A stretch of 64,000 bases of DNA from Trichosphaerium sp. ATCC 40318. Its lineage: Eukaryota > Protista > Tubulinea. Positions 24,110 through 29,342 of the stretch are shown here, in pieces; position 1 is the first letter of the stretch; each line of letters opens with the position of its first letter. Location of the stretch: assembly GCA_038496445.1 (NCBI GenBank), contig JALMLS010000255.1, positions 310,001-374,000 on the forward strand, in the 5' to 3' direction. A program made the position numbers and the translations under genes. The notes beneath the pieces were generated by a model, which saw only the letters and a program-made list of their open reading frames with translations, was not told where the DNA came from and ran no database searches.

Positions 24110-24358
24110 CTATCCAAGCTGTAATATTTGGAAAACTCTTTGACCGAATTAGGAATACCCATGACTTGATGTGGGTCCAGTACTTACACTATGTATGCTC
24201 GCTATTAACTTTGTGCAGTTTATTAGTATCACGTGACTTTCAGTCGTTAGAAGAATGTTGAGTCTGAGGAAAGACTTAACAAAAAAGCCAGAATTTATTG
24301 TTGAATCTTCGTTTTTATTGAAGAGGAGCTGTTCTAGTAATAGTACAGTTAGAGTGAG

Positions 24359-27300
24359 ATGGCGTCACCTGTTGGGAACCCAAAAAACGCCGAGCAGTCT
24401 GAAATGCTACCTTGTGACCTTTTACCGAGCAAAGAGACTTTACTCATGGCCTTGGAATGTTGTCGTATCGTAAATGGAGAAAAAGAACAGTTACACGTGC
24501 GCACTCTATCGGTACTCCGCTCTGATGATTTTATAAACGGTCTAGTGCGATGTTCGGTGTCAAAAAGCTGTAAACTCTTCGTACAAATATGTTATCATTA
24601 CATGCCAAGCTACAAACACAATGTACGTAGCCTTCAAGAGTTTAGATGTGCGGTTACCTCTAGACTTACCACGTTGGGGAAAACATGATAAGGGGCCTGT
24701 CCTTAAACGTGCGTTTGTATCTTCACATGTTTTTTTCTGACATTGTTTGTAGACATCTTTAACATTGCGGAGCGGATACCTTTACGCCACATGGCACAAC
24801 AACTAATGTACAATGCTTAATACTAATTAGAGATATATCTTACTTTATACAAAGATGTGACAGTATCAATGTCGTCCTGTGTGGTCATTGTTTGGGTGGT
24901 GTCGTTGCACAAATTGTGTACACAAAATTATATGAGGAGCTTGCCAAGACAGACCAACAACGAGCTCGAGGTGCGTCTTTACTACCTGAAATGATTAGTT
25001 ACATATCGTAGAGTACTTGGGTAAAGGCATGCTTAGGTCTATATCATTCGGAGCACCATTGTACGCAGGAAAAGCTTGGGTCGATCATTTGAAAAAGTTG
25101 CGCATTTCAGAATACATGTGCAATATTACATACGAAGGCGATATAATCTTAAAATTGTTGAGTCTGATACTACTCGATTTCAAGACATCACAACATAGAG
25201 AGACTGCTAAATTAGTACCATTGGAGCTTCTTATGGAGAGTCTTCTTAAAAATAATACATGGACTGTGCGTTTTAAGTAAACGTGTATTTTGGTGTTTAT
25301 AAGGTTGTAGATGGACCGAGATTCTTTCAAGAGATTAAGTAAGATGATACGCATGGATAAAGAAAACCATGAAAATGATATAAGTCCAGTTGGACAATTC
25401 TGGATAATGTATGAGTCACATTTGACAGCAGAGCTCATACATGTGCGTTAAGTTACAGAATTAATCACGTGACTTATATGTTATCAATTAGGAGGCATCT
25501 CCTAAAGCCATCACATCTGCTCTTCTCCATAGAGAATTAAAATTAGCGCTTGGTGATGAGAAAGGAACTTATAGGACGCAGGTACGCTATTCTCAGGAAA
25601 GGACAAGCTTAAAACACGTGTTTAGCATTCACCACGAATCTATCGCTTTTTGTTGAAGCACAGAAAGGAAGACAGGATCGATGAGGAAGAGTCTGGCCAA
25701 GCGATTAGTATTGGTCAAGGTCAGCATTATTCATTTCTGTCGGCGGTTTCTAAAACAAGTGTAGAGCTTTTACCACAAATATTTGGGTCAAAGGCGCTGT
25801 GGCTTGCAAAAGTAAATTTATTACAGATAACGATAGAGGTATAACCAACATATCTTTTTCACTTATTCACGTGAATGTTAGGGTATTAACCTTGACCTAT
25901 CAAATGGCAGTAAAGGGTGTGCAGTGCTACTCAATTCAGATATGTATTGCCAAAGAATAGAGAGCAGGAGTATGGATGGCAAAGATCTTATAGTTGTTTT
26001 CAGTCTTGACGAGCTTCCTCATGAAATAAGAGTCTTAATCACGACAGACTTTGGAGACACTCAAGTATCCGTAAGGGCAGGAGATATATACGTACGCATG
26101 ATCAATCATTAACAATATATAAAACAAATGAATTCTAGGAGCACAAAGGCAAAGTCTTACCACTTCCGAACAAATTCTCAAATGTTTCTGTTTTGTTCTT
26201 GATTACCGTTCTGTTTCGTGGATTGTGGACTGTAATGACCGGAACAAAAGGTCGTCGTCAGACTGTATTCATGACAGATAAGATGTTAAATGCATTACGT
26301 GATGTCGATGCTATCTTCAATTGTGGTCTTGCACGTGTTTTAAAAGGAGACTCTTTCGACACTTATGATATCGTTTCGATTCAAACTCTTGCTGCACTTG
26401 CTCAAGAGCCTCTAGAGCGAATGTATGAAAGTGCTACATCTCCTCTACAGGTTCGTATCCCTGTAGTACACCCAGGCCATGGAATATCAGTATCAACACC
26501 AGGAGGTGTTCTAATGCCTATGATAATTGGAGCGAACAAAGGAAAAAGTGCTTCATCTAGGACTAAGAACTATAAAGCTGTTTTGCGGTATCTAGCATAT
26601 CAAATAGGTATTTCTCCTTGGGAAGTTTTGGACACAGAGTATGGTTTAGAAAAGGTTCCAAATCAACATTATATGTAACCGCACTAACAACATTAGGGAT
26701 TGAGAGATTTCTTCTCTTTAGTGTCAGCAATGAAAAAGCAACTACAAGAAGATCTATTTACTATTTCAAGCACAAAAGCAATATTCCTTAGTGGATGCGC
26801 ACTCCCTCTTCATAGTGCTTCAAAGAGGTAAGTCTAAAAAAACCTGCACCTAATACATGTGACCTAACTGCTTGTTAAACCTTGTAGCTCGCAAGTTGAA
26901 GCTAAAAAGCGTATACGTGTTGCGATAAATATATGTGATATGCGACATTGGCTTACATGTCGTTTGTATGTTTCAGTCATGGGAACACGTAACTCTGGCA
27001 CGTGTTAAACTTGGAATTATAATAATGTTTTCTAACAGTTGTACTTAGAAAAAGGAAGGATTTCTAGAGAATTGTTCAATGTTAGAAGCGAGAATGAAAC
27101 AGGTCCCTTTTTCAGAGCTAATAATTCAGAGTATTTATTTGGGTTGGACTGCCCAGCGTTTGAAGGTAAGACAAAAAAAAGTAACAACAAAAGACAGTTT
27201 CGAACCATAAAGGTAACAACTTTCTTTGTTAGAAAAATCGGTTCGGTTCACACCATTTGTTCGTGCATGTTCTATGGTATTGGTACTACTAGATGCTACA

Positions 27301-27716
27301 TCAATAGGTAGCGTTGAGGCTGGATATATTGCAAAAGCACAGAAATTAGCACCAGTAGACCTTGTTGTATTGACGCGAATTAAACTGTTGACTATTGATC
27401 AAAAAAGAGATTTGCATGAGTACTCCAAACAATGTAGTACGACACTTGGTATTCCTGCTAAAAAAATGGTGTTATTGAATGAAGGCCAAGAACCTCTAGA
27501 AGCACACAGTACGTCGTACAAAGTACACTAGACAAACGAATTAATTTTGTTCTTTCAGATGTGATGTCGCTTTCAGAGTTTCGTGGAGCTCTCTTTGGAA
27601 AGCTCAGAAGACGTGTTCAAGATCCTCATGTTATACAAGACATACGAAATGCAATGACTAATGTTGTAAAGACTAAACGAGGCATTCGAGAATACAGAGC
27701 CTTTACTGATGTTTAA
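24359..27716 (+). CDS. Lipase_3 (EDS1/PAD4-like) domain fused to C-terminal degenerate P-loop GTPase-like domain
   Basis: NVVLCGHCLGGVVAQI (elbow at 24883-24900), SISFGAPL, NITYEGDII, ISPVGQF and HSPRIY. C-terminal VSVMGTRNS|EKG, LFGLDCPAF, VLVLLDAT and LVVLTRI. Multi-exon; stop at 27714-27716. Confidence 0.75.
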
Positions 27717-27878
27717 CAAAATAAAAATATTTCCTCGAAACAACAATGTCTAGACCAACGCCCTCCACTGTAGCAATTTAGTACAACCACACCGCACCTA
27801 TCAACATACACGGGTTGTAGTTCTTCAATAAAACAAGCAACACTGAGGGATTTGAAGAGTGATAGGAGGATAATTTTA

Positions 27879-28577
27879 CTATTGTTTACAAGCTATCTTA
27901 ACATCTGCAATGTTAAGTTGTCCAGTTTTCTTGTAGACACCCTCGAGGCATACAAATCCATTGATACCATCTACAAGACTTTCTTGAAGAGCAATGGTCC
28001 ATGCGTATTGATTATCTTGAATAGTCAACTGAGGACCTGCAGCTTTCTCGTATGATTCCACAATCGAGGCAATTTCACCGCTAGGATCAACTGTTTTTGT
28101 AACTGTGAAGGTATGTCTACCGAATACAAGCATATCGTGTTGCGCTGAGATTAATTGGAAGACCCAACCAAATGCAAACTGATCCTTGTTTGCAGAGAAT
28201 CCGTGTTGATCAACATAATGAGGGGCTGTCATGCCTGGTGGGAACACAATTTTTGGTGCATTTGTGTATGCAATTTTGTCGAATGGAGCACAAATAGAGG
28301 TGTCTTCGACGTCGAAGGTTGCGAAAAGATGGTTCCAGTATACCCAGTAATCAGGTTTATCGAAGAATTCAACAAGAGTGTCGAAGGGAACGCCAACATG
28401 TAGTTCGAATTTCTGTGGTGGCATCTGATTTGAGTCTGCAAGTTGTTTGTAGTACAAAGTGGTGTTGTGGATGCTAGGGTCAGAGCATGCCGGGACATTG
28501 TTTCCGAGACCATTGAGAGCATGTGTGAAAGCAGCGAAAGAGAGCAGAAAACAAACTGTGAAGAGCAGTGTTGGCAT
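27879..28577 (-). CDS. Intronless secreted SRPBCC-like protein
   Basis: Signal peptide MPTLLFTVCFLLSFAAFTHA; VPFDTLVEFFDKPDYWVYWNHLF...FGW...GRHTFTV...ESYEKAAG follows the Polyketide_cyc2 pattern. Confidence 0.6.
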   Translation of the reverse strand: MPTLLFTVCFLLSFAAFTHALNGLGNNVPACSDPSIHNTTLYYKQLADSNQMPPQKFELHVGVPFDTLVEFFDKPDYWVYWNHLFATFDVEDTSICAPFDKIAYTNAPKIVFPPGMTAPHYVDQHGFSANKDQFAFGWVFQLISAQHDMLVFGRHTFTVTKTVDPSGEIASIVESYEKAAGPQLTIQDNQYAWTIALQESLVDGINGFVCLEGVYKKTGQLNIADVKIACKQ

Positions 28578-29342
28578 TGTAGTTGATGTCAATGTTTTGT
28601 GACTAAATGACGTGTGACACGAATTCACAGCAACGAATTCGTGCAGGTAAAATGAAAAAAAAAAATGCTAACTTTTAAACATAAAAAGAGGTCGCAAGGT
28701 TTTGGTAAATAGTTTGGTCTGGCTTTACCTTTTTAAGCAGCTTAAAGGGTTCGGTTTTAATGAATTCGTTTGAGAAATTTGGTGAAATCTACGTCAGAAA
28801 TAACCCAAAAGCCCACGTTTGTAACCAACAAGCAAGTTTTATTTTGTGACACGAAAAATCGTACTGAATTGCCAGCACATCACGTGTTGTGCTGTTTTGG
28901 GCGAGTAAGCACGTTCTGGATTGCCTAGATGTAGTTGTACAGAAGTAAAGCAAGTTCGGATGTCTCCAGACCAGCTGACCCTTTTTTGAGTTTTCCCGTC
29001 AAAAATAGTCTATGTAATGCAACTGGCAATGCTACGCCATTATTATACTGGCTTGCGTTGGTGGGTTGCCAATTAAACGCATGCCACCCCATTTACGCTA
29101 CAAAGTCATTTAAAGTACCTAAAGATGTTGTCGTTACGCGTCAGATCGGCGTTTGGGCGCAGTAGTGTTGATTTGAAGCGAGTGTCGCCTGTTAACCGAA
29201 TTTATCCATATAAACTCAGCATACGCCACAACAACGCAGTTAGAGCAATAAGACGATGCCATTCGGTAAGAAAAAGTCAATCAGCAGTAAAACGTTACTG
29301 AGCATCAAACAGACAAGCGATCACTCACGATTGCATTTTGAT

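Follow-up and report, generated by a model that had tools for sequence, protein, structure and literature searches.

The window analysed here, 64,000 nucleotides (nt) of contig JALMLS010000255.1 from Trichosphaerium sp. ATCC 40318, holds at positions 24359 to 27716 of its forward strand a gene of 15 exons whose product of about 895 amino acids (aa) combines a class-3 lipase-fold domain with two further regions. It is a single gene, transcribed and spliced, and encodes one three-part protein from what we infer to be one continuous transcript: an N-terminal lipase-fold part with cysteine at the position of the family's nucleophilic serine, a middle region with no detectable relatives, and a C-terminal part that probably descends from a GTPase domain. 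Coordinates of the features are collected in Table 1 and refer to the window.

With the introns removed, the reading frame is uninterrupted over 2688 nt, from the ATG at 24359 to the TAA at 27716, the single and terminal stop codon, and specifies 895 aa. The region is eukaryotic, with many short introns, and the motifs discussed below, when quoted from the unspliced DNA in six-frame translation, are spread across three frames. An initial annotation made from the DNA alone had proposed the exon joins and suggested checking them against RNA; when contigs from two public RNA runs were laid on positions 24200-27800, eight of the 14 introns were seen spliced out, in agreement with those joins. The eight verified introns, one of which (26998-27048, GC..AG) was seen spliced in run X2, are all 41-67 nt long and have a 3' end of the form YAG. 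The remaining six, of 40-47 nt, are predicted from the frame and GT..AG sites alone. Two of these, 24570-24609 and 24808-24854, end in AAG rather than YAG; for the latter there is no frame-compatible alternative, and RNA supports a start of exon 4 at or before 24857. For the first intron, four solutions are compatible with the frame (24570-24609 or, in its place, 24512-24545, 24552-24609 or 24570-24630) and yield proteins of 889-897 aa; the lipase result and our conclusions are identical under all four.

A class-3 lipase fold with cysteine at the elbow

Profile comparisons identify the N-terminal domain as a very divergent homolog of the class-3 lipases (Pfam Lipase_3, PF01764), with a predicted alpha/beta hydrolase fold. 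Pfam, NCBIfam, PDB and ESM Atlas were queried with single exon pieces, whereas full-domain comparisons (hhalign and home-made profiles) used the spliced protein. Seed sequences were drawn from at least 113 viral-contig loci carrying the pattern T-G-H-S-L-G-G-A-L-A, of which 100 open reading frames (ORFs) entered the profile (ten of ten sampled were verified as Pfam Lipase_3), together with 120 database proteins. Compared by hhalign with these 220 Lipase_3 sequences, residues 1-345 of the spliced protein gave a probability of 95.5% (E 1.4e-8) over 167 columns, covering query residues 24-219. Against a profile of the 100 viral ORFs, residues 125-208 of the spliced protein scored 12-14 bits and GHCLGG, SFGAP and YEGDII aligned in register; the home-made full-domain profiles gave 12-20 bits overall. 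In a shuffle control that kept GHCLGG, the real profile score was reached by none of 500 shuffles, the best of which scored 9.0 bits; because of this control and the hhalign result, we regard the relationship as beyond chance. The ESM Atlas features of exon 5 point the same way, with Lipase_3 clusters in 86 of 100 matches at a score of 0.93. The N-terminal lipase_3-type domain of the initial annotation is borne out. Pfam Lipase_3 scored exon 4 alone at E 0.008 and 16.5 bits, under its 22-bit gathering cut-off for this single-exon query, and gave no score on the other exons.

The distance from known members is large, the best pairwise score against any of the 120 lipases being about 5 bits. Exons 4 and 5 had no match in phage records by tblastn, and exon 5 had none in a word-indexed protein search; a related-locus scan of viral contigs with exon 5 found no relatives, and PDB sequence searches with exons 4, 5 and 14 returned nothing useful. 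The collection of seed sequences also turned up a 928-aa ORF on a giant-virus contig from a metagenome-assembled genome (L045:6436-9219), whose Lipase_3 domain lies centrally and is accompanied by a P-I-Q-Q repeat and a highly basic tail; it illustrates the large viral class-3 lipases with several domains.

An L-INS-i alignment that included 60 Lipase_3 ORFs gave the register of the putative catalytic residues: Cys134, Asp204 and His320 align with the family Ser, Asp and His, with long insertions between the triad acid and base. The geometry of the G-x-S-x-G elbow is kept, but its nucleophile residue is Cys134 rather than Ser, the TGT codon at 24889-24891 occupying the position of the family Ser. 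The Cys elbow, the FGAP loop and the triad-position Asp and His that had been picked out in the unspliced DNA are thus all present in the spliced product, in register with the class-3 lipase triad.

Run X1 represents a second, slightly diverged source (1-2%), and its comparison with the window bears on both the protein and the codon. Across exons 4, 5 and 7 all nine differences are synonymous, as against a synonymous share of 21% among the possible single-base changes in those exons (chance P ~9e-7 for nine of nine); the protein is therefore under purifying selection. The X1 contig over 24857-24968 differs from the window at 24918, 24928 and 24930 and leaves the TGT codon unchanged. Because an independent contig carries the identical codon beside nearby differences, a sequencing error at this codon, which the initial annotation had named as a possible objection, is excluded.

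Serine stands at the elbow in all 120 database Lipase_3 proteins, a sample biased by the Ser-containing search words. A DNA pattern for TGH-C-LGGALA, with a Cys codon, matched no locus in the viral collection and none in one genome each of 185,579 prokaryotic species, whereas the Ser version matched at least 113 viral and at least 120 prokaryotic loci. A full-text literature search for GHCLGG in lipases found nothing relevant. The initial annotation had proposed a survey of paralogues for Ser versus Cys; the window itself contains no paralogue. We conclude that the Cys nucleophile is genuine, selected and, by the viral and prokaryotic collections, rare. Outside the class-3 lipases, PhaC combines a GxCxG elbow with a Cys-His-Asp triad on which the product is carried as a thioester (PMC5509742), and a report on the Cys-dependent thioesterase cyclase MacB-TE describes a rare Cys nucleophile within a Cys-His-Asp triad (PMC13288461).

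The middle and C-terminal regions

No relatives of the middle region were detected when its exon pieces were compared with Pfam, NCBIfam and the Atlas. When the 172-aa exon 10 was compared exhaustively by phmmer with 1.84 billion representative proteins, a single weak and probably spurious match was returned, and a Joint Genome Institute (JGI) metagenome scan with the same exon found no relatives; the window's own genome is evidently missing from the protein collections searched. The AlphaFold model of exon 10 has a predicted local distance difference test score (pLDDT) of 34, too low to use. A strongly hydrophobic segment of 19 residues (476-494; 26184-26240; Kyte-Doolittle 1.86) could be a membrane helix or a buried helix; were it membrane-spanning, the lipase part and the GTPase-like part would be separated by the membrane.

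Some further likenesses were met in this region. The string 'VRIPVVHPGHGISVSTPGG' at residues 565-597 (26451-26549) is similar to the final strands of IPT/TIG repeats from a bacterial FG-GAP protein, and the 'GANKGKS' that comes after it is a Walker-A-like string one residue short; neither likeness has statistical support. An IPT/TIG domain at residues 547-597 was rejected, since five repeats, none significant by itself, add up to the E-value of its sole match, to the bacterial FG-GAP protein. A second GTPase-like domain in the middle region ('SRSMDGKD', 'TTDFG', 'GANKGKS') was likewise rejected, with an hhalign probability of 0.2% and no profile score, as was a duplication of the C-terminal domain within the middle region (z = 0.8).

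The C-terminal stretch of about 200 aa is probably derived from an Era/EngB-type GTPase domain. At the G1 position, the motif GxxxxGK[ST] reads G-T-R-N-S-E-K-G (residues 708-715), in which Lys714 is retained but Glu713 replaces the second Gly and Gly715 the Ser/Thr, and hhalign places this string in register with GRPNVGKS of Era-type GTPases. At G3 and G4, DxxG reads D-C-P-A and [NT]KxD reads T-R-I-K. All three motifs come after hydrophobic strands and in GTPase order, with spacings of 38 and 53 residues. If the GTPase origin is real, the natural reading is a pseudo-GTPase in which normal GTP binding and hydrolysis should be lost, since G1, G3 and G4 are all degenerate.

Statistical comparison of this region with GTPases gave marginal values. 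In hhalign, residues 699-866 are laid full-length on an alignment of Era, Der, MnmE, YihA and HflX G domains, at a probability of only 0.8%. A profile hidden Markov model of E. coli G domains scores the region at 0.7 bits, a value that 41 of 1000 shuffles reach, as do 20 of 513 segments taken from real, unrelated alpha/beta proteins; a protein search with that profile returned only enterobacterial Era and YihA and did not improve the GTPase profile. The ESM Atlas features of exon 14, which covers the G4 part only, offer a lead, with the top named matches all to GTPase families (PduV-EutP, GTP_EFTU, Dynamin_N/MMR_HSR1, Ras, Arf and NOG1) at a score of 0.85. The AlphaFold model of this 91-aa exon is of low confidence (pLDDT 51), and Foldseek found no match to it at E < 0.3, with GTPase chains in about 19 of the top 50 rows by hand count; a JGI metagenome scan with exon 14 found no relatives. 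The degenerate GTPase C-terminus described in the initial annotation therefore stands as regards the G1-, G3- and G4-like strings, their order and their spacing, whereas a true P-loop fold is weakly supported.

The gene fills the space between two opposite-strand genes, with spacers of about 250 bp upstream and about 160 bp downstream. The upstream neighbour encodes MORN_2 repeats, and the downstream ORF, from its predicted leader, may encode a secreted orphan protein. No recorded sequence matched either neighbour in exact-sequence look-ups.

Table 1. Features of the lipase-fold gene and its neighbours, in window coordinates
Feature	Position	Strand	Basis or remarks
Whole coding region	24359..27716	+	15 exons, ~895 aa (889-897 by choice of intron 1)
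Exons 1-5	24359-24569, 24610-24708, 24753-24807, 24855-24970, 25012-25265	+	
Exons 6-10	25311-25442, 25492-25581, 25626-25838, 25882-26091, 26139-26654	+	
Exons 11-15	26697-26827, 26888-26997, 27049-27165, 27233-27508, 27559-27716	+	
RNA-verified introns	24971-25011, 25443-25491, 25582-25625, 26655-26696	+	Spliced contigs
RNA-verified introns	26828-26887, 26998-27048 (GC..AG), 27166-27232, 27509-27558	+	Spliced contigs
Class-3 lipase-fold (alpha/beta hydrolase) domain, residues ~24-335	24430..25670	+	Very divergent; hhalign, profiles, shuffles
YVAFKSL, counterpart of 'vvAFRGT' strand and oxyanion-hole motif, degenerate	24624..24644	+	Alignments
GHCLGG elbow, residues 132-137	24883..24900	+	In register with GHSLGG in several alignments
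FGAP loop, residues 173-176, counterpart of family 'TFGsPRVG'	25047..25058	+	Alignments
Asp204 in YEGDII (201-206), triad-acid position, family 'nDiVPrlP'	25140..25142	+	Alignments
His320 in QHSPRIY (HSPRIY 320-325), triad-base position, family 'DHxxxxY'	25626..25628	+	L-INS-i alignment
Middle region, residues ~336-705, ~350 aa, no detectable relatives	25671..26975	+	Database searches by exon
Probable degenerate TRAFAC-GTPase-like domain, residues ~699-895	26955..27716	+	
G1-like VMGTRNSEKG, residues 706-715, split by GC..AG intron	26976..27056	+	Sequence and RNA joint
G3-like LDCPA, residues 745-749	27144..27158	+	38 residues past G1
G4-like LTRIK, residues 798-802	27370..27384	+	53 residues past G3
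MORN_2-repeat gene, intronless, 182 aa	23564-24109	-	Pfam E 2.6e-9; divergent from lipase gene
ORF, intronless, 249 aa, hydrophobic N-terminal leader	27882-28628 (ends 27879)	-	No Pfam match; convergent with lipase gene

Proposed function and alternative readings

We propose, with a probability of roughly 0.5, that the locus encodes one expressed, selected and lineage-restricted three-part protein in which a predicted thiol-based acyl hydrolase or transferase is joined to non-catalytic accessory domains. The lipase-fold domain would work through a Cys-His-Asp triad and an acyl-thioester intermediate, and the dead GTPase-like tail and the orphan middle region might serve as non-catalytic modules for docking, oligomerisation or regulation. 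It is rare for a class-3 lipase nucleophile to change from Ser to Cys while the other triad residues are retained and purifying selection acts on the protein; if active, the enzyme would add a new thiol-based member to a large and biotechnologically important family, and possibly an acyltransferase rather than a hydrolase.

Several observations weigh against this proposal. In the lipase part, the oxyanion motif F-R-G-[ST] reads F-K-S-L (residues 79-82), the VHxGF motif is blurred in the L-INS-i alignment, and the domain lies below the Pfam cut-off on the exon pieces scanned. A single base change turns Ser (AGT or TCT) into Cys (TGT), and the 1-2% divergence of X1 is a short time depth for judging conservation of the Cys; EDS1 and PAD4, moreover, retain a complete triad without depending on it. 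At the C-terminus, the GTPase profile test is marginally above chance (p ~0.04), the hhalign probability is low, and the exon pieces matched nothing in Pfam or NCBIfam. Finally, 24359-24856 and 25655-26600 are without RNA contig cover, and the continuity of the transcript across them is deduced from the open frame.

Some of these features would suit a non-catalytic pseudo-enzyme. The lipase fold would then serve to bind a ligand or partner, its Cys would be incidental, and two dead enzyme domains would together make the whole protein a scaffold or sensor. The altered oxyanion motif, the extreme divergence from the 120 lipases and a partner domain without any intact GTP-binding motif are in keeping with such a protein, and purifying selection suits a binding role equally well as catalysis. 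Dead lipase-like proteins, however, usually lose the three triad positions and the exact G-H-x-L-G-G that are kept here; there is also no EP domain or other EDS1-family feature, and no ligand or partner is known. We favour the thiol-based acyl hydrolase or transferase over the fully dead sensor or scaffold, which we regard as the less likely alternative. The ancestry of the tail is a separate matter: the C-terminal 200 aa might not be GTPase-derived at all, with the motif-like strings arising by chance, and the protein would then consist of a Cys-type lipase-fold domain and a long orphan extension. None of the three motifs is intact, about 4% of shuffled or unrelated real segments equal the 0.7-bit profile score, the hhalign probability is 0.8%, and Pfam, NCBIfam and PDB sequence searches of the pieces gave no match. 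Against this stand three weak, independent lines that favour a GTPase origin, namely the order and spacing of the motifs beside hydrophobic strands with a full-length hhalign register, the language-model features of exon 14, which give GTPase families exclusively, and the enrichment of GTPase chains among the non-significant Foldseek matches; we consider a chance origin of the strings the less probable. A more far-reaching reading, which we think unlikely, is a protist-specific family of lipase-fold and GTPase-fold fusions, whose thiol lipase domain would act in a cell-autonomous switch for defence or signalling, either as its effector or by sensing a small molecule. Were it true, the protein would have arrived independently at a function analogous to that of EDS1-type or GBP/IRG-type systems.

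Two further explanations concern the gene rather than its product. A lipase-fold gene and a downstream neighbour could have been wrongly joined, as no RNA contig bridges 25655-26600 and the two introns there are only predicted; yet the frame runs without a stop codon across all predicted junctions, whose splice sites are canonical GT..AG, exons 8-10 admit no other path that keeps the frame, and gaps in RNA cover are expected because the depth of the runs is only 2-9x. Two joined genes therefore seem improbable to us. The locus could also be a decaying pseudogene or an assembly artefact, to which the strong divergence of the lipase domain might point, together with one low-depth X1 contig that lacks a base at 25052 and would be frameshifted there if the deletion were real. 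That deletion is probably assembly noise, for it lies close to where a contig of about 3x depth ends and next to the start of a second contig. The 2688-nt frame over 15 exons is intact and correct splicing is seen in two RNA runs, and with nine of nine differences synonymous the pseudogene reading falls; it is already largely refuted, and we give it the least weight of all. The thiol-based three-part protein thus remains our preferred reading, and its combination of lipase, dead GTPase-like domain and orphan region may mark a lineage-specific family. We regard it as an interesting orphan and not as a new system.

Comparison with known systems

With class-3 lipases from fungi, plants, bacteria and viruses the protein shares five features in order, namely the pre-oxyanion strand, G-H-x-L-G-G, the FG-x-P loop, D-I-[IV] and H-x-x-x-x-Y, and it differs from them by its Cys nucleophile, by FKSL in place of FRGT and by large insertions between acid and base. 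Its partner domains, including the GTPase-like one, were not seen among the 120 multi-domain Lipase_3 proteins listed, where the partners include C2, EF-hand and protease domains.

The initial annotation had likened the protein to EDS1 and PAD4 and suggested an immune or signalling role. Like EDS1, PAD4 and SAG101, it combines a class-3 lipase-like domain at the N-terminus with a C-terminal part that is not a lipase, and the use of a lipase fold for purposes beyond lipolysis is an idea that could, by analogy, apply here. The likeness is nonetheless generic: the source organism is not a plant, no context of a TIR pathway is seen, and the EP domain (Pfam EDS1_EP) gave no match on exons 7-11 at E values up to 1-10, in a search of exon pieces only. 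The segment SPVGQF (residues 270-275), which had been compared with the YxPFG motif, falls in an ordinary variable stretch of the general class-3 lipase alignment and could not be tied to EDS1 or PAD4. With no EP-domain match on any exon and no family-specific feature found, neither the proposed EDS1/PAD4-likeness nor the immune or signalling role is supported.

Era/EngB/Der-type TRAFAC GTPases (Pfam MMR_HSR1) share with the C-terminal part the G-x-x-N-x-x-K context past a hydrophobic strand, D-x-P-x and T-x-x-x at G3 and G4 spacing, and a strand-helix pattern that continues to the C-terminus. The window protein differs from them in having no intact G1, G3 or G4, and its profile similarity is marginal; if the relationship is real, it would be a nucleotide-free or otherwise atypical pseudo-GTPase.

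For the Cys nucleophile, the closest parallels lie elsewhere on the alpha/beta hydrolase fold. Dienelactone hydrolase is a Cys-nucleophile alpha/beta hydrolase with a GxCxG elbow and a Cys-His-Asp triad, and among the known hydrolases of this fold with a Cys elbow, acyl transfer, cyclisation or polymerisation is at least as frequent as plain hydrolysis. Together with PhaC and MacB-TE, it shares elbow and triad with the predicted active site described here, whereas all three belong to subfamilies of the fold different from that of the window protein. Most likely the Cys arose independently within the class-3 lipases, apart from PhaC, dienelactone hydrolase and MacB-TE.

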